NCBI RefSeq assembly: GCF_031769215.1
Contig: NW_026782264.1
Coordinates: 434,001 to 498,000, forward strand
Source: Ylistrum balloti
Lineage: Eukaryota
Direction: 5' to 3'
DNA length: 64,000 nucleotides
The notes under the pieces were generated by a model. It was given only the letters and a program-made list of their open reading frames with translations, was not told the origin of the DNA and ran no database searches. The translations under genes were made by a program, and so were the position numbers. Positions 1,448 to 58,804 of the stretch are shown here, piece by piece. The stretch's first letter is position 1, and every line of letters starts with the position of its first letter.

Positions 1448-2774
1448 TCCTTAGCTTCGACAGATGCACAAGTTAGTTTGAACAAAGACTTTAATTTTGG
1501 CCACTACTCAGGACAAACAGATATAAGTAATCAGCGTATGGCACCTGCTGTAGTGTTAATTATCTTACAATGACGGGGTACGATACCAGGAAACAGAGTG
1601 CCGCGCTGATTAACAAAACAAACTGGTATTGTAGTATAGTCCTAATTATATTATCAGTGTCATGGATTCGATGTTGCCTGAGAAGAATCCCGTGTTCATG
1701 TCCGTGTCAAATGTATGCCTTCATCAGACCTAATAACCGATAACTCCAACATGAAACCTTCACATTAACTTAAAGACGAACTTTTAATTACTACAGAGAA
1801 AGGTCAAACACATCCTCCTGTTATTATAAATCACATGATCAGGGCTTAGAAGTATCCATAATTATGTTAAGGATATGTGTCAATGAGGGTGCTAGAATTC
1901 CCAAATCATATATAATTATCAGCTTATTCTCTCACACGTGAATCACCAGGGGAATATATATCCTGTGTAAATTTACAACATCAATGTAGACTACCAGATA
2001 GGTAACATGCCATATTTGGTGTTCAATTATGTCTGATGCAAATATTACAAGACATGCTACATGTTAGCCGCGTCTGTCGTTCCCAATAAAATGTACTGGG
2101 TTGTAGGTAATGCCCATAATCGTATTTGATTTAAGGGTATTCAGATGTTCTATCCTCTAAACATACATAAAGTACATGTAAGCCGTGAAGAGAGCAGCAT
2201 TGCATTAAGGTATCTATGTATCGTATCAAATTAAGCGATCACACCAAAGACATACAGCGGAATACAATTAAATGCTGTACACTTTAATGCAAAGTTTTAC
2301 AATAAGTGCAAATAATGGTTTAAACTACATTATAAAGCTGATTCGTCCCTACAGGATTTGTCAGTGATGTTACACGAGGAGCTGCCCGATTACAATAAGA
2401 TCTACACGACATCAATATCCAGATCAAAGTGGGAAGACACAGAGGCCCTAAAATTCAATGATTTTCATATGACTTTCCAAAACTGCATAACTTCGAACGT
2501 ATGTCAAAAAACCTATGTATGGACATATTCCAAACCACATCACTAATCTAATTAATACAATTTCAAAAATTAAAGTTGGAATTTATCAAGACAGAATATA
2601 AAGAACATAAAACAGGAACATACTGTAACTGTACTTTAAGCTTTAGCTTTGAGACAGCAGGTGGTTGACAATGCTGGTGGACTTTTAGTCCTGGTGGAGT
2701 GCCGTACCTGCATGCCACGTTTTAATTCAATCGAATATTGGTACGGTTCAGAATATACACATGGTCTTTTCTGG

Positions 2775-2975
2775 TATATGAAATAACGAAATGTATTTAA
2801 TCATAGGACTCCTGCACCACCCTGTCTAAATTTTTACTTTTCTTTTGATCTTCAGTCGCCTCCTAAGCTTCAACTTTTAAAGCACTTCGCATCACTGACG
2901 AGTCGTAGAAGTTCGAAACTACGGTATGATACAGTTTAATTCATTATTTGGCTATATGCTGTATCTAAGTCTAAA
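2775..2975 (+). mobile_element. ~200-bp hammerhead-bearing dispersed element (PLE pLTR- or retrozyme-like), degenerate copy
   Basis: GCATCA-CTGACGA-GTCG-TAGAA-GTTC-GAAA-CTACGG-TA-TGAT at 2889-2930. The upstream flank (TATGAAATAACGAAAT...AATTTTTACTTTTC) aligns with the reverse complement of 30378-30495. The downstream TATCTAAGTCTA matches the TATCTAACTCTA terminus of other copies. Confidence 0.8.
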
Positions 2976-3029
2976 TGTACGTCTTTTGTACAATCTTTAA
3001 CACTACAGAGATAAAGAAAGGCAGAAACC

Positions 3030-20645: not shown

Positions 20646-21302
20646 ATGTGTATTCCATAGAACATGTGCGATAACGGCCGCAAAATAGTCGTTTTATGTT
20701 TATAATGAAATCCATTATCATTCTAGTTTTATTTGATTTTGGTGGCCATTTTGAAAATCAACCATTGGTTTTATTTTAGGCCCTCTTGCTATTGTGTATC
20801 TGTGTAACAAATGTAAGACGTTGTAAGACGAGTTTAAATATACGTTCGAAATGACCATGGGTAGCTTTGCCTGTTGAAAAACGAAATTGTCTCGTTGATG
20901 AAGCGGAACAGTTCAACCTTCCACACACTTCGATCTTTTTCCTTGTACTTCTTCACGAGTCTCATTATATCTCTTTCTTTCGTTCATATTTTCCTCGTTT
21001 GAATGTTGACAAATAATTTTGTCATGTGAGTTGTGCTCTGTTATTTTCGTTGGTTTTGACGTTTAAGTACAATTATGAAACAGCAGAACATGATGGATGT
21101 TTTACTAAAGATTGTACAGACTATACACACATAAACAGTACTTTTTAATACATTTAGGATGGATTCAATAGAGCCAAATTGTGAATAAAAGTGAATCACG
21201 TTTTACAGCATGTGATTCCAAGACCTTATATGGTTTGAAAGACATTTGAGTTTGGTTTCAAGATAGCAGCGCGGTATCCTAGGCATCGAATTGTTAGCCA
21301 AA

Positions 21303-21345
21303 GCATCACTGATGAGTCCTATAAGAACGGAACAGTTACATAATG
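21303..21345 (+). ncRNA. Degenerate minimal hammerhead motif
   Basis: GCATCA-CTGATGA-GTCC-TATAA-GAAC-GGAA-CAGTTA-CA-TAATG. The GAAA is mutated to GGAA and the cleavage triplet is lost. Confidence 0.7.
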
Positions 21346-21462
21346 TGTTTTTCACTCATGTGTCGTTAGTTATTATTTTTTTATCGGAAAGTTATTTTAT
21401 ATTATATATAACATAGAATATCTCACCCCAGTGGCCATCTAGGTTTCGAACTTTGACCCTAA

Positions 21463-21545
21463 GCGTCCCTGAGGAATCCTAGAAGGACGAAACAGTTGTA
21501 TGATGCAGTAAATTAATTGTTTGACTCCAATGTATCTAACTCTAA
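21463..21545 (+). ncRNA. Minimal type I hammerhead motif with intact core and imperfect stems, plus the element 3' terminus
   Basis: GCGTCC-CTGAGGA-ATCC-TAGAA-GGAC-GAAA-CAGTTG-TA-TGATGC (21463-21506), followed by ...TATCTAACTCTA. Confidence 0.8.
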
Positions 21546-28525: not shown

Positions 28526-29545
28526 CTTTATAAAGGACCTTCGGCGTCCATCGGCCGAAGGGATTATCAAGATATCTAAATTTACCCTACCGTTCGAGAT
28601 ATCTAAATTTACCCTACCGTTCGAGATATCTAAATTCCCTACCGTTCGAGATATCTAGATTTACCCTAACGTTCTAGATATCTAAATTTACCCTACCGTT
28701 CGAGATATCTAGATTTACCCTACCGTTCGAGATATCTAAATTTACCCTACCGTTCGAGATATCTAAATTTACCCTACCGTTCGAGATATCTAAATTCCCT
28801 ACCGTTCGAGATATCTAGATTTACCCTAACGTTCTAGATATCTAAATTTACCCTACCGTTCGAGATATCTAGATTTACCCTACCGTTCGAGATATCTAAA
28901 TTTACCCTACCGTTCGAGATATCTAGATTTACCCTACCGTTCGAGATATCTAAATTTACCCTACCGTTCGAGATATCTAGATTTACCCTACCGTTCGAGA
29001 TATCTAAATTTACCCTACCGTTCGAGATATCTAAATTTACCCTACCGTTCGAGATATCTAAATTCCCTACCGCTCGAGATATCTAGATTTACCCTAACGT
29101 TCTAGATATCTAAATTTACCCTACCGTTCGAGATATCTAGATTTACCCTACCGTTCGAGATATCTAAATTTACCCTACCGTTCGAGATATCTAAATTTAC
29201 CCTACCGTTCGAGATATCTAAATTCCCTACCGTTCGAGATATCTAGATTTACCCTAACGTTCTAGATATCTAAATTTACCCTACCGTTCGAGATATCTAG
29301 ATTTACCCTACCGTTCGAGATATCTAAATTTACCCTACCGTTCGAGATATCTAGATTTACCCTACCGTTCGAGATATCTAAATTTACCCTACCGTTCGAG
29401 ATATCTAGATTTACCCTACCGTTCGAGATATCTAAATTTACCCTACCGTTCGAGATATCTAGATTTACCCTACCGTTCGAGATATCTAAATTTACCCGAC
29501 CGTTCGAGATATCTAAATTTACCCTGCCGTTCGAGATTATAGTTT
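28526..29545. repeat. 27-bp minisatellite (~36 copies) flanked by a GC-rich hairpin; possibly a Helitron/Helentron-type non-autonomous element
   Basis: Unit GAGATATCTAAATTTACCCTACCGTTC at 28569-29538, with 25-bp variants. A perfect 8-bp hairpin CCTTCGGC-GTCCATCG-GCCGAAGG lies at 28538-28561 and the palindrome CTTTATAAAG at 28526-28535. Confidence 0.9.
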
Positions 29546-30197
29546 ATAACTTTATATTTGTTTTGTGGTCAATGTATGTGATGTATCTTTTGTAATATTT
29601 TGTGTCTTGATAAATTGGCAATTAACTTGTCTGTACTGTCGTTATTTCTTCATTGATGTTATACCCAACAAAGGATATTTATATACATAAAAATGGACCT
29701 TGTCCAGATAAACAAACAAATAACAATGCATTTATCAATGTTAACTTGACCTTGGTTTTTATCACTACATTATGCAACGTCATTTCCGGTTTATCGACAA
29801 TATTTGTATCGTACTACATAGCTGAGATGAGAGATGGGTCCCGCGGGACCTGTTATTGAAGTCATTACCCTGCTCAAACTAGTAAATACCTCATCTACAC
29901 AACAGGCAGGGAGCTGGCCGTCAGCTCTGTGAAGTCATTTTTGCTGGCCCAATCAGTCTTATTGTGTATACGTTGTATATTAAGACGTATTCATCGGTGA
30001 ATGCCTTATCAGTCAATTTCAAAATATTAACAAACCCTACAGATAGAGAAAGCTTCGGAGAAGGACTCTTGAAGTCTCTAGTATACATCTCGGAATCATA
30101 GATGTGTAGGATGTGCTAATTCTAAACGAATATTACAGAAATTGTACAAAAGACACACAAGTGAATAGTTCAGAGTTATATACAGTGAATTCATCAG

Positions 30198-30377
30198 CAT
30201 CATACAGCTGTTTCGTCCTTCTAAGACTCGTCAGTGATGTTACATCATACAGCTGTTTCGTCCTTCTAGGACTCGTTAGTGATGCTACATCACACAGCTG
30301 TTTCGTCCTTCTAGGACTCGTCAGTGATGTTACATCATACAGCTGTTTCGTCCTTCTAGGAATCGTCAGTGATGCTA
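30198..30377 (-). ncRNA. Head-to-tail array of four 45-nt minimal hammerhead ribozyme units
   Basis: Minus-strand consensus TAGCATCA-CTGACGA-GTCC-TAGAA-GGAC-GAAA-C-AGCT-G-TA|TGATG. It contains the canonical core CUGANGA...GAAA, stem I CAUCA/UGAUG, a 4-bp stem II, a palindromic stem III loop and a GUA site. Units start at 30198, 30243, 30288 and 30333. Confidence 0.92.
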
Positions 30378-30502
30378 AGGGCTTAAATTGGAGCCTTGGA
30401 GTCGACAAAAATCGAATTTAATCGAAGAAAAGTAAAAATGTAGACGGGGAGGTGTAGTAGCCCCATGATTAAATTTCGTTATTTTCATGTATCGGATATA
30501 TC

Positions 30503-30578
30503 GGCCTCGAACCCGCGACCAAGAGGTTGAGGGCGAGTGATAAAGACGGTCAGACGCCTTAACCAGTCGCCACCGCTT
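30503..30578 (-). mobile_element. tRNA-derived SINE head (Pol III A and B boxes)
   Basis: Minus strand reads GCGGTGGCGACTGGTTAAGGCGTCTGAC (A box)...CTTTATCACTCGCCCTCAACCTCTTGGTCGCGGGTTCGAGGCC (B box). Confidence 0.75.
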
Positions 30579-31512
30579 AGGACATGGACTTTTAGATCGC
30601 TTGATTCGCGATATCTTTAGTAGCGCCGATGGGTGTGTTTTGTTAATATGAACAAAAAAAAAAAAAAAAAAGAAAAAAAACCGTTCCACTAATCGCATTA
30701 CTATAACATAAAAATAGTTCTAGTCGAGGGCCTTGAACTCATGTTTCTTGCCCAAAACACTTTATGTAAAAACCTTCTATAAAGACATTAGATTTTTTAA
30801 TGATGTTTTGTCAATTGAGTGACCACATATTGTATTTATTGTGGAAATTTTTCACAAATTCAAAACGTAAAATACGCTTGTGTCGAGGGATTTATATGAC
30901 AGAGACAATGACTTGCAATATCGAAACCTGTACAGTTATAGTACAAAGAGGAAAAGGTTAACGTTTGGATGCACGTATAACTTGACAAGGCAGAAAGGAG
31001 ACGTTGGACAGCAATAATGGACATATCGCCTGAACCGGAACTACTATGGTTGTTTCTGTCAATGCCCGACCTTTATGCTTAACGGAATTAGTCTGAGAGG
31101 GTAATGTATCGTGGACAAATTGACAATAGACACGAGGTTTTTGTCGTGCCCAGAAGCTTTTCCTGGCGCTTTGTGAACACTTATAAATGTCTGCAACTAA
31201 AATGTTGTATGTTATCTCGGGATTTTCCAAGGTAATCCTCAAGTTGTTTTTGTGACGCTAAGTATCAGAGGTTTCTATTTCTTTCTGAAAACAGGATACA
31301 CATTGCTGGCTTACTTTTGAAAGTCTGCTTAGATCACTAAATTTCAAGACCACAAAAAGTGAAAGGATGATCAAACTAATTGGTCTTGATGGTAGACTTC
31401 CGTCGCTCGTTCCTTTATTGCCGACATTCCACATATAAATTTAAGTGAATCCAAACAATCTCATGTTCTCAAAACGTTTATCGGGTGAAAAGCAAGGAAA
31501 CAACCATATATA

Positions 31513-33237
31513 CCAACATCTAACTCATCTACTTGAGATTCCACCAACATCTAACTCATCTACTTGAGAATCCACCAACATCTAACTCATCTACCTCAAA
31601 ATCCACCAACATCTAACTCATCTACCTCAAAATCCACCAACATCTCACTCATCTACTTGATAATCCACCAACATCTAACTCATCTACTTGAGAATCCACC
31701 AACATCTAAGTCATCTACTTGAGAATCCACCAACATCTAACTCATCTACCTCAGAATCCACCAACATCTAACTCATCTACTTGAGAATCCACCAACATCT
31801 CACTCATCTACCTCAGAATACACCAACATCTAACTCATCTACCTCAGAATCCACCAACATCTAACTCATCTACCTCAGAATCCACCAACATCAAAATCAT
31901 CTACTTGAACATCCACCAACATCTTACTCATCTACCTCAAAATCCACCAACATCTCACTCAGCTACTTGAGAATACACCAACATCTAACTCATCTACTGG
32001 AACATTCACCAACATCTAACTCATCTACCTCAGAATCCACCAACATCTAACTCATCTACCTCAGAATCCACCAACATCTAACTCATCTATCTCAGAATCC
32101 ACCAACATCAAAATCATCCACTTGAACATCCACCAACATCTAACTCATCTACCTCAAAATCCACCAACATCTAACTCATCTACCTCAGAATCCACCAACA
32201 TCTAACTCATCTACTTGAGAATCCACCAACATCTAACTCATCTACCTCAGAATCCACCAACATCTCACAGATCTACTTGAGAATCCACCAACATCTCACT
32301 CATCTACTTGAGAATCCACCAACATCTTACTCATCTACTTGAGAATCCACCAACATCTCACTCATCTACTTGAGAATCCACCAACATCTCACAGATCTAC
32401 TTGAGAATCCACCAACATCTAACTCATCTACCTCAAAATCCACCAACATCTCACTCATCTACCTCAGAATCCACCAACATTTAACTCATCTACTTGAAAA
32501 TCCACCAACATCTAACTCATCTACTTGAGAATCCACCAACATCTAACTCATCTACCTCAGAATCCACCAACATCTCACAGATCTACTTGAGAATCCACCA
32601 ACATCTCACTCATCTACTTGAGAATCCACCAACATCTCACTCATCTACTTGTGAATCCACCAACATCTCACTCATCTACTTGAGAATCCACCATCATCTC
32701 ACTCATCTACTGAAACATCCACCAACATTTCACACATCTACTGAAACATCCACCAACATCTCACTCATCTACTTGAGAATCCACCATCATCTCACTCATC
32801 CACTTGAGATTCCACCAATATCTAACTCATCTACTTGTGAATCCACCAACATCTCACTCATCTACTTGTGAATCCACCAACATCTCACTCATCTACTTGA
32901 GAATCTACCATCATCTCACTCATCTACTGAAACATCCACCAACATTTCACACATCTACTGAAACATCCACCAACATCTCACTCATCTACTTGAGAATCCA
33001 CCATCATCTCACTCATCCACTTGAGATTCCACCAATATCTAGCTCATCTACATGAGAATCCACCAACATCTAACTCATCTTCTTGAGAATCCACCAACAT
33101 CTCACTCATCTACCTCAGAATCCACCAACATCTCACTCATCTACTTGAGAATCCACCAACATCTCACTCATCTACTGGAACATCCACCAACATCTCACTC
33201 ATCTACTTGAGAATCCACCAACATCTCACTCATCTAT
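31513..33237. repeat. 31-bp minisatellite, ~56 copies
   Basis: Unit CCAACATCTAACTCATCTACTTGAGAATCCA; 31-bp period seen at 31513 and 31544. The period is not a multiple of 3, so the S/T/P-rich ORFs cycle through frames. Confidence 0.97.
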
Positions 33238-38234: not shown

Positions 38235-38445
38235 TTGATTTACAAACGCTTTTCCTGTTGGTTCCGTTGTTGTATACCTTGTTATCATTTAAGAACGTAA
38301 CCAAGATAAAGCAGAAGACGCTTACCCTTTCTGAACACTTTGTCTTAATGTACATGTTCTCTTTTAAGAGTCTCCTTATAAATCATTCTTTTGTTTGCCC
38401 TGGTTTTATGGAATTTGAATTTGAGTTATGATTCGATTGACATTT
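38235..38445 (+). mobile_element. Naiad-type PLE 3'UTR fragment
   Basis: CCTGTTGGTTCCGTTGTTGTATAC, GCAGAAGACGCTTACCCTTTCTGAACAC and TTTGCCCTGGTTTTATGGAATTTGAATTTGAGTTATGATT match the 3200-3490 and 24590-24845 copies. Confidence 0.75.
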
Positions 38446-55965: not shown

Positions 55966-56702
55966 ATGAGCTCTCCATAATTACTGCACACAGGTTTCTC
56001 TATATAAAAGTAATTTGTAAAAGGGGAATGAATTGAATTTCACGTTCGGTCGGTTGAGAAATCGAATTCCGGAGGCTTAGAAAAAGCCAGACCACTTCAC
56101 CACAGTGTGTAAATAAGATACAGATGCTGAACCATGTACACACCAATAGACACACAAATAATACAATAGGATTCCAGTACAGTAGATCAAATACAAAAAC
56201 ATACGGTCAAAGTATTTCAAAACATAGGTAAACTTGTAACAGAAGCCGGAAGGTGACTTTCCATTAAGTTTGAATATTTTTTTGATTATGTTCACCTCCT
56301 CAGGATGACGTCATCTACAGACTACAACAAACTACAAGTTGTTAATCCATTCACAGTATTAACAGCATTAAGAAGAAAATAATCACCACAAATTGTAGCT
56401 ATTTTAAACTAATAATGGAAGCCGGAAGCTAATTAAATATGACATTGTAACCGTAAACGACCTGTCTAAGTAAACCAAACATAACACAGTGACATAAAGC
56501 ATTCCTCGACTCGGTGACAGATTGTAAACATCTCAGCGGAATTGAAGATTAATATCAGATATCAGAAAGCCCTGTAACACTACAAATTACAAGCAAAGCC
56601 CACATCGACCAGTGTAGCACAAAGACGCACAAGAGAATAACACCTTTAGATACACAGTTAAACTAAGATACCGAGAAAACTAGTGAGTTAGACTATGTTA
56701 TA

Positions 56703-57073
56703 TAATTGTTTCGTACTAGATCCTGTCAGTGATATTACATCATACAGGTGTTTTACTCATCAGTGATGCTACATCATACAGATGTTTCACTCGTCGGTGG
56801 TGCTACATCATACATATGTTTTACTCATCAGTGATGCTACATCATACAGGTGTTTCGTACTAGATCCTGTCAGTGATGCTACATCATACAACTGTTTCGT
56901 CCTTTTAGGTCTCGTCAGTGATGCTACATCATAAAACTGTTTCGCCCTTCAAGGACTCGTTAGTGATGCTACATCATACAACTGTTTCGTCCTTCTAGGA
57001 CTCGTCAGTGATGCTACATCATACAGCTGTTTCGTCCTTCTAGGACTCGTCAGTGATGCTACATCATACAGGT
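56703..57073 (-). ncRNA. Head-to-tail array of hammerhead units: four 45-bp units, 42-bp and 34-bp deletion variants, and partial end units
   Basis: 45-bp units start at 56882, 56927, 56972 and 57017; the last is the perfect consensus TAGCATCACTGACGAGTCCTAGAAGGACGAAACAGCTGTATGATG on the minus strand. A 42-bp unit starts at 56840, and 34-bp units start at 56738, 56772 and 56806. Confidence 0.93.
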
Positions 57074-57231
57074 GCACTTCTAGGTTCTGCACGGGGACAC
57101 CGGAAGATTTCATGAATTCAAAATAATGAATGGAAACAAAGGAAAATGTGAGCGTATCTTTACAGGAAACTGTTCAATAAATATCAGGCCTGGTAACAGG
57201 CCAAAGTAGTCGTCTTCTTCTATATGAATCG

Positions 57232-57478
57232 TACCCAACCGGATCAGACCTGGTGCTCTGAAAGGGTAACCGTCTTCTGCTGTATCGGTGATACACAAAT
57301 GGATCAGACCTTATGCTCTGAAAGGGTAACCGTCTTCTGCTTTATCGATGATACCCAACTGGATCAGACCTGGTGCTCTGAAAGGGTAACCGTCTTCTGC
57401 TTTATCGATGATACCCAACCGGATCAGACCTGGTGCTCTGAAAAGGTAACCGTCTTCTGCTGTATCGATAATACCCAA
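57232..57478 (-). repeat. 60-bp tandem repeat x4 derived from a PLE 3'UTR motif
   Basis: Minus strand GCAGAAGACGGTTACCCTTTCAGAGCACCAGGTCTGATCC matches GCAGAAGACGCTTACCCTTTCTGAACAC (38311) and CAGAAGACGCTTACTCTTCTGGAACATCCGGTC (47558). Confidence 0.85.
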
Positions 57479-58804
57479 GATATTGTTCAGAGATACATCA
57501 GCGATACCAGACGTTTCAATTTTACAACCACCTTTTATATATAAATTTAACTGGTTGTAAGTTTGATTTGCCTAACCATTTATCAGTACTGGTTTATATA
57601 TATTTGTGTAAATTTATATTGTCAGTTAAGTAATACTTTCTATCTGGGTGGTTAATATCTTTTTAGATTATCTCTAATCTCTATTGTAACTAAGTATATC
57701 TTTATCTCAACCTTAAAACCAATTGTACAATTTATATTCAGTTCTGTTCATATGATGTGTAATGATGTTTATGAACTGTAAATGTCACAGGGAGAGGATT
57801 AATATAAGCTTTGCCTGGTGCCCGTATTGTATTTTTATATGTGGAATAAAATTATTTTGAAAAAAATGATGTCAAATCTCCGTTCACAATCTGTAGATAC
57901 ATTTATATACATAGGCTTACTGGTGCCACTTTTTCGAACGAAAATTAAAAGAAATTATATTTCTACATATTCTTTAATTGTACTGAAGAGATAAAAAGTG
58001 TTTCCAGCTAACTCGTTCGTACGACTTAATTGTGTTTTTTTCGTTCTGAAAGTGACATGGACAAGCTTTCGTGAATTTCAACCACCTACACAAATTATCT
58101 TTAGGTCTATATGTGTCGGTTTACTAGCGACGTTTCCATGGTGAAGTCTATATTTATACACTGTATTCATGATTGATGTATTTTTCATCTCGACATCCAC
58201 TATTTAGACCACAATATCTACTCGTGCGCCTATAGTCTGAGCTTAAGGGGCTGATCAATATGACAGTAAAGCTCCCCTTGGACCACATAATTACCTCTTA
58301 CACTAAGAATTACACTTGATCTTTCCTAACATCATGTTGGTCACAAGAAGACAAGTTTATTTCCTCTTAAGGTAACAGTGGCCAGGACATTGTCCTGATA
58401 CAGAGATCCCTTGCCGTATATAGGACAATGATTGTATGGAGGAAAGTGCATCATTCCATTCAGTTAGAAATTAGTCATTCCCAAATTTGTTTCTCGGAAT
58501 AGTTCTAGGCGTATTGAAGAAATCTCAAAGCTTCCTTACCGTAATGAACCACAAATCTAGAGTTGGTTCCGTTGTTCTATTGAATTTGAGTTTGGATTGT
58601 GATTCTGTTCACATGATTGTAATTTTTGTTGTTCCAGTCTGTGAACAATATACGCATTAAGCCGTGTACAAACAGTGTTTCTCTTATCAATCAAGGCAAT
58701 GATATTACTACCGTATAAAAACCACCCTCACTCTTACATGAAATCCTCAAAACAAACTCTAAACAACACAAAGTTAGCATACAGAGACACAAGTTCCAAG
58801 GAGA

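Follow-up and report, generated by a model that had tools for sequence, protein, structure and literature searches.

A partly decayed array of 45-nt minimal hammerhead units in Ylistrum balloti, with predicted type III folds across the unit junctions

RESULTS

The locus and its tandem units

The window is a stretch of 64,000 nucleotides from a contig of Ylistrum balloti, and its features are collected in Table 1. An uninterrupted open reading frame of 211 amino acids with a Ras-family GTPase domain (Pfam PF00071, E 1.8e-29) is located 3 kb from a tandem array of hammerhead motifs (array 1), on the strand opposite to the hammerhead sense. Directly upstream of array 1 in the hammerhead sense is a minisatellite of 60 bp units; a 34-nt piece of this unit recurs elsewhere in the window, and a reading frame of 106 amino acids inside the 60-bp repeat is probably spurious. 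The window also contains unrelated minisatellites, with units of 27 bp (36 copies), 31 bp (56 copies), 60 bp (4.5 copies) and 38 bp (3 copies).

Array 1 occupies 57100-56701 of the minus strand and comprises nine head-to-tail units, four of 45 nt that are each one minimal hammerhead and five dead derivatives of 42 or 34 nt. Read along the minus strand the 45-nt unit runs UGAUG-UAG-CAUCA / CUGACGA / GUCC-UAGAA-GGAC / GAA / ACAGCUGU / A, in which ACAGCUGU is palindromic. Tandem Repeats Finder (TRF) returns a period of 45 with 5.6 copies and 87% matches at 56823-57070, adjoined by a 34-nt array at 56726-56855 (period 34, 3.8 copies). A 21-mer of the unit has 11 matches in the window at three mismatches or fewer, compared with 0 expected.

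An earlier sequence-only reading had described each minus-strand 45-nt unit as one minimal hammerhead, with the units abutting, and the sequence reads exactly so. It had placed the array at 56882-57073. The 45-nt units are real, but the array continues to 56701 as dead 42- and 34-nt units; unit 3 combines a G5>A change with a UUA cleavage site, while helix II of unit 4 contains an A.A mismatch; and a sister array (array 2) exists at 30198-30377. Seven of the nine units or junctions of array 1 are defective. Exactly two junctions have an intact core with every core nucleotide kept, and they are neighbours, at the predicted cuts 57067|57066 and 57022|57021 where the same reading had correctly located two competent consecutive junctions. 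A third junction, 56977|56976, may perhaps also function, cut by the outer core of a predicted double hammerhead formed on palindromes 1 and 2. Array 1 has the character of a DNA minisatellite, with units in the range of 10-100 bp arranged head to tail and dead variants amplified within it (the 42-nt form twice and the 34-nt form three times).

Table 1. Positions of the hammerhead arrays, their junctions and other features of the window
Feature	Position	Strand	Remarks
Array 1, degenerate partial unit	57067-57100	-	Gives junction J0 its GUA site and the 5' strand of helix III (CACCUGU, one C.C mismatch); sequence reading, Rfam alignment
Array 1, unit 1, 45 nt	57022-57066	-	Every hammerhead core position intact (CUGACGA, GAA, A15.1-U16.1, GUA)
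Array 1, unit 2, 45 nt	56977-57021	-	Core intact; palindrome is ACAGUUGU, in which a G.U wobble maintains pairing with ACAGCUGU
Array 1, unit 3, 45 nt	56932-56976	-	Dead: G5>A (CUAACGA) and UUA site with C15.2/U16.2 mismatch
Array 1, unit 4, 45 nt	56887-56931	-	Core intact; helix II A.A mismatch (GACC/GGAC); Rfam Hammerhead_1 21.5 bits
Array 1, 42-nt dead variant	56845-56886	-	CUGACAG replaces CUGANGA
Array 1, three 34-nt variants	56743-56844	-	Without helix II, amplified in place; TRF period 34 and sequence reading
Array 1, 42-nt dead variant, second copy	56701-56742	-	Array end
Junction hammerhead J0, type III reading	57024-57074	-	Predicted cut 57067|57066; RF00008 43.9 bits, E 4.6e-08
Junction hammerhead J1, type III reading	56979-57029	-	Predicted cut 57022|57021; RF00008 47.1 bits (scanned alone), E 3.2e-10
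Array 2 (sister array), about 4 units	30198-30377	-	Rfam 50.3/47.1 bits; TRF; 92.8% identity to array 1 over 180 nt
Copy of ~300-nt dispersed hammerhead-bearing element containing array 2	30100-30566	-	Alignment to the copy near 2690-3000
Solo copy of the parent element	2690-3000	+	Single decayed type I hammerhead (core starts 2895)
Two decayed hammerhead copies	21290-21510	+	About 160 nt apart, same orientation
Box A-like and box B-like stretch	30500-30575	-	TGGTTAAGGCG and GGTTCGAGGCC
Minisatellite, 27 bp x 36	28570-29537		160-bp higher-order period
Minisatellite, 31 bp x 56	31512-33236		
Minisatellite, 60 bp x 4.5	57211-57478		
34-nt piece of the 60-bp unit	38305-38338		
Reading frame of 106 amino acids	57224-57544		Inside 60-bp repeat
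Ras-family reading frame, 211 amino acids	53158-53793	+	

The unit junctions as type III hammerheads

The core nucleotides C3U4G5A6N7G8A9, G12A13A14, A15.1-U16.1 and H17 are all present in J0 and J1 (units 1 and 2) and in two junctions of array 2, and are incomplete in units 3 and 5-9. In the type III junction alignments and in the predicted fold of isolated J1 three helices surround this core, with helices I and II closed by loops and helix III open. The hairpin UGAUG-UAG-CAUCA is a normal type III helix I, since helix I of the RF00008 consensus likewise has 5 bp and a loop of 3 nt.

The sequence-only reading had proposed that the junctions form a circularly permuted type III hammerhead with an 8-bp helix III and had named the Rfam covariance models as a check; run here, these and RNAfold agree with it in silico. 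The Rfam gathering scores are 48.5 bits for Hammerhead_3 (RF00008, type III) and 34 for Hammerhead_1 (type I). Both junctions of array 1 score just below the former (43.9 bits for J0 and 47.1 for J1), while in array 2 the junction at 30295-30345 lies above it (50.3 bits) and that at 30205-30255 has 47.1 bits; E values of the type III matches in the two arrays range from 1e-6 to 1e-10. Read as type I, unit 2 scores 30.0 bits. The Rfam alignment of J1 is free of non-canonical pairs. Neighbouring type III matches share one palindrome, so that a scan of the whole region reported only one of them; for the same reason the folds of adjacent junctions are mutually exclusive at any one moment.

Predicted folding of single and multiple junctions

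As an isolated 51-mer J1 has the hammerhead as its minimum free energy structure in RNAfold (-13.4 kcal/mol), as does an isolated junction of array 2, where it is the type III form. The isolated 51-mer of J0, which carries the C.C mismatch in helix III, is instead predicted to adopt a competing fold in which the CUG of the core pairs with the CAG of the palindrome. An isolated junction of consensus sequence takes the type III fold, with a pair probability of 0.98 for helix III.

The predicted minimum free energy structure of a consensus trimer consists of nested double hammerheads with all three junctions in complete three-way cores, and natural array 2 has the same nested form. In consensus arrays with an even number of units one inactive CUG:CAG conformer stays inside. 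For natural multi-unit transcripts of array 1 the nearest-neighbour model gives a probability of 0-0.15 for helix III between adjacent junctions. This low value arises because the CUG:CAG conformer competes, which makes the efficiency of cleavage uncertain, and in part because long-range nested versions of the same helices are preferred and are uncounted by so simple a measure. The numbers therefore express competition, and were rejected as evidence of inactivity. Nearest-neighbour energies also omit the tertiary stabilization of the hammerhead core; no tertiary loop-loop contact was identified in the junction hammerheads.

The sister array and its parent element

Array 2 is contained within a copy of a dispersed element of ~300 nt. 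When the array is collapsed to one unit, the element aligns with the copy near 2690-3000 at 67% identity over 338 columns, with a score of 204 compared with a shuffle maximum of 60. Homology thus extends on both sides of the ribozyme, and array 2 is an internal expansion of the hammerhead of the element. The same hammerhead also occurs in the window as several solo copies inside the longer dispersed element; these are too decayed to provide covariation. The segment repeated within the parent element runs from TAGCATCA to GTATGATG, which is the ribozyme domain closed by helix I plus two or three bases, and this places the unit boundary at the outer base of helix I rather than at the cleavage site. 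The flanks of array 1 resemble the tail of the parent element by eye, at a similarity that is not significant (score 50, shuffle maximum 60).

Arrays 1 and 2 share the unit junction, and the register of their alignment pairs a G5>A unit in each. These correspondences suggest that both descend from a multi-unit ancestor. One junction of array 2 is doubly dead, with a GUG site and G5>A. Pairing of defects within the junction reading was considered as a signal and set aside, as it occurs in array 2 (GUG with G5>A) but the defects of unit 3 in array 1 pair in the type I reading.

Further observations were made around these copies. Array 2 is flanked by the two large unrelated minisatellites of 27 and 31 bp units. 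Just upstream of it, inside the parent element, is the stretch resembling box A and box B; a Pol III-type head, as in tRNA-derived SINEs, may be present at this position, the resemblance being by eye only and neither ARAGORN nor Rfam returning a tRNA match. At 21290-21510 the tail of the parent element is followed by a second copy truncated at its 5' end, a partial tandem of the retrozyme or Penelope-like element (PLE) kind. A Pfam search of six of the eight open reading frames of at least 130 amino acids in the window found no reverse transcriptase (RT) or GIY-YIG domain, a scan that decayed or distant copies would escape.

Contigs from RNA-labelled runs

No RNA run containing the locus was found. 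Logan contigs from four RNA-labelled runs under two organism labels, both different from those of the DNA runs that bear the locus, were aligned to 56400-57500; these data are contigs only and carry neither strand nor read-end pile-ups. Each run has 88-600 contigs, placed only on the intact units of array 1, and the summed word depth reaches 22,805 on 57029-57065. Contigs at least 99% alike number 23-67 in three of the four runs and three in the fourth (X13). The sequence-only reading had proposed RNA libraries as a place to seek products of the array: consensus-type units are present in the RNA-labelled libraries, but the dead variants of array 1 and both of its flanks have a depth of about zero in all four runs, and the contigs give no sign of transcription of array 1 itself.

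Most of the contig differences listed affect neutral positions (N7, loop 1, and the palindrome, where the change is compatible with wobble pairing), and core-inactivating variants are minor among them, A14>G at 6-11% being the only one listed. About 40% of the unit depth carries an AGGG insertion with C>T (TGATG-TTAGGG-ACATCA, aligned at 57009-57021), corresponding to a unit variant of 49 nt. Its loop 1 reads UGAUGU-CCCUA-ACAUCA and includes one telomere-type hexamer (CCCUAA in the hammerhead sense); neither this variant nor a TTAGGG dimer is present in the 64-kb window. A length of 74-80 nt is common among the contigs; it equals the period plus 30, the value obtained when a tandem or circular template is traversed as a cyclic path at k=31. 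Joints that go back 43-91 are seen among the contigs, and others of 1.1-1.8 kb end in hammerhead units. Hundreds of core-intact consensus contigs at high summed depth indicate that the satellite family may be expressed and processed, although such contigs cannot separate circles, linear multimers and carried-over DNA of a high-copy satellite.

DISCUSSION

Origin and possible activity of the array

Array 1 is probably a small and partly decayed array of a bivalve 45-bp minisatellite, the unit of which is one minimal hammerhead, and it probably grew at least partly as DNA. The source of the unit would be the single hammerhead of the dispersed ~300-nt element, which is non-coding and of a retrozyme, Penelope pseudo-LTR or SINE-like type, with growth most likely occurring at least in part by slippage or unequal exchange. 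Growth as DNA offers the simplest origin, given the local multiplication of dead variants and the unrelated minisatellites in the vicinity. The embedding of array 2, in register, in a parent element with solo-hammerhead copies elsewhere in the window argues for this account; against it, the shared junction and G5>A register would fit equally well a multi-unit block spread by transposition or by an RNA route.

If the minus strand is transcribed, the UGAUG-UAG-CAUCA of each unit would close helix I locally, and the palindrome ACAGCUGU of one unit would pair with that of its neighbour as helix III, generating a type III hammerhead that makes up one of the two halves of the classical double hammerhead. 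Nesting of double hammerheads could, in longer arrays, bring all junctions into complete cores. With only two junctions intact, and perhaps the third at 56977|56976, array 1 would release at most one or two 45-nt RNAs. On the modelling, the type III junction fold is a sound structural reading and an extreme, spacer-less case of the double hammerhead. The sequence-only reading had suggested that tandem repetition activates a weak motif. Complete type III junction folds are indeed obtained in silico, but this is the established principle of the double hammerhead and hence not a new mechanism. Its candidate reading of array 1 as a minimal retrozyme or generator of 45-nt circular RNA is not supported: seven of nine units or junctions are defective, dead variants have been amplified and the RNA-labelled runs lack locus-specific sequence.

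A minimal retrozyme would act through RNA: transcribed arrays would cleave themselves to 45-nt monomers with 5'-OH and 2',3'-cyclic phosphate ends, RtcB would circularize these, and a Penelope-like RT would copy the circles or multimers by rolling circle into new arrays. The junction hammerheads are complete by Rfam and RNAfold, arrays 1 and 2 have the unit junction and the G5>A register in common, and a weak helix III of 2 bp would protect the monomer circle, by the logic put forward for viroids and newt RNA (PMC4209133). The RNA-labelled runs add the hundreds of consensus-unit contigs, many of 74-80 nt, the backward joints and the minor place of core-inactivating variants, but strandless contigs could equally stem from circles, linear multimers or carried-over genomic DNA. 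Published circles are moreover of 170-400 nt with a self-paired body (PMC7229834), the unit boundary is at the outer base of helix I and not at the cleavage site, dead units have been amplified, and no Penelope RT reading frame was found among the six scanned with Pfam. We regard this route as unlikely. The wider proposition that the spacer-less 45-/49-nt satellite is a living RNA-propagated element, whose nested double hammerheads cut themselves and whose unit RNAs are circularized and copied back by a Penelope-type RT, is doubtful to a slightly greater degree.

A minisatellite of DNA alone, with no activity at the RNA level, would make the hammerhead an accident of which transposon segment happened to expand. 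Most units of array 1 are dead, dead variants expand, several unrelated minisatellites share the window and array 1 has no locus-specific RNA signal. Yet in runs labelled as other organisms core-intact consensus units are kept at 99% identity or above, the variants listed are mostly neutral, and every array seen has as its unit precisely the ribozyme domain closed by helix I, so this stricter form of the DNA account appears quite improbable. Very improbable indeed is use of the arrays as a processing module by the host or an element, whereby arrays in introns or UTRs would cut host transcripts, or the 49-nt CCCUAA variant would serve telomere-related priming as in endonuclease-deficient PLEs. 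Such elements do combine reverse-complement telomeric repeats with adjacent hammerheads (PMC8557442), TGATG-TTAGGG-ACATCA makes up ~40% of the depth in the RNA-labelled runs, and the long contigs end in hammerhead units. However, the hexamer is single and near the 5' end of the cleavage product rather than its 3' end, the window contains neither the 49-nt variant nor a telomeric repeat, and no gene model ties array 1 to a transcript.

The preferred account, an array grown at least partly as DNA, leaves room for activity of the family. Were propagation through RNA true, this would be by far the smallest retrozyme-like replicon known, with nothing but its own ribozyme. An active family would set a lower size limit for mobile or circular RNAs delimited by ribozymes, and would mean that tandem repetition by itself, with no other sequence, is enough to make a self-sufficient type III ribozyme out of an animal type I hammerhead; it would bear both on the origin of viroid-like and retrozyme RNAs and on compact designs for small circular RNAs. 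Even as a DNA minisatellite and no more, it would clearly exemplify a transposon ribozyme turned satellite, and would caution that thousands of the 'ribozymes' counted in motif searches will be satellite units.

Comparison with known hammerhead systems

Double hammerheads, in which tandem copies share a palindromic helix III, are known from newt, avocado sunblotch viroid (ASBVd) and PLEs (PMC4209133 Fig. 1A; PMC6466107; PMC6765202); these sources credit them to Forster 1988 (as cited in PMC4209133) and to Lunse 2017 (as cited in PMC6466107 and PMC6765202). The 45-nt unit resembles the minimal hammerheads of newt satellite 2, ASBVd and PLEs in its type I motif, whose helix III has 2 bp and ends in a palindromic loop, in that two tandem copies would merge helix III into a long active helix, and in a weak monomer of the sort thought to protect the unit-length RNA. 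The copies recur at ~330 nt in newt and at kilobases in PLEs, whereas here they abut without a spacer at a period of 45 nt. Lacking a spacer, helix I is closed by 3 nt and the junction becomes a bona fide type III hammerhead by the Rfam model, and, unlike the known double hammerheads, the arrays could fold as nested ones.

Plant and viroid type III hammerheads (RF00008) have the same topology, 5-bp helix I with a 3-nt loop, core CUGANGA...GAAA and NUH site. They differ in loop 2, which is of 8 nt compared with 5 nt here, and in the loop-loop contact, of which none was identified here; moreover, an animal type I motif here takes on the type III form only through circular permutation across repeat units. 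Scanning public collections with the core and helix II gave only four matches, which are single hammerheads of phage or environmental origin sharing GUCCUAGAAGGAC. These environmental or viral hammerheads (L001:758-782, L002:1346-1370, L003:11262-11286 and L004:5652-5676) have an identical core and helix II, CUGAUGAGUCCUAGAAGGACGAAAC, with unrelated helices I and III. Judged by sequence, the shared string looks like convergence and not kinship. The unit junction had zero matches in the metagenome contigs scanned, which hence supply no extra arrays for covariation.

Metazoan non-LTR retrozymes likewise consist of head-to-tail repeats with one hammerhead each, in genomes that also have dispersed hammerhead retroelements, and are abundant in RNA libraries, a likeness that here concerns RNA-labelled contigs in which circles, multimers and DNA carry-over are indistinguishable. 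The tandem units of animal retrozymes span 150-450 bp, include a highly self-paired non-ribozyme body and give circles of 170-400 nt (PMC7229834), and it has been argued that they derive from Penelope pseudo-LTRs (bioRxiv 10.64898/2026.07.22.740005). The present unit is all ribozyme and at 45 nt falls outside this size range; the Mytilus retrozyme hammerhead (PMC7229834, Supplementary Table 2) also differs from it in sequence. The hammerhead of the Penelope-like pseudo-LTR is close in its minimal type I motif, the helix III of which is palindromic and very short (here AC-AGCU-GU in the type I reading), but it belongs to repeats on either side of an RT and GIY-YIG reading frame, which the weak test of six reading frames with Pfam did not reveal here. 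As with Sm-alpha and Sj-alpha of Schistosoma (PMC6765202), the parent is a short dispersed non-coding element bearing one type I hammerhead; here, however, the tandem unit is the ribozyme and not the whole element, and the tRNA-like head is unconfirmed by ARAGORN and Rfam.

The sequence-only reading was aware of no ribozyme-only 45-nt satellite, and full-text searches of the literature likewise yielded no description of a spacer-less satellite with the hammerhead alone as its unit, Lunse et al. 2017 being covered only through the reviews that cite it. The principle of the double hammerhead is already known. What these searches did not bring up is the geometry, with a period of 45 nt comprising nothing but ribozyme, compared with the 150-450 bp of published animal retrozymes.
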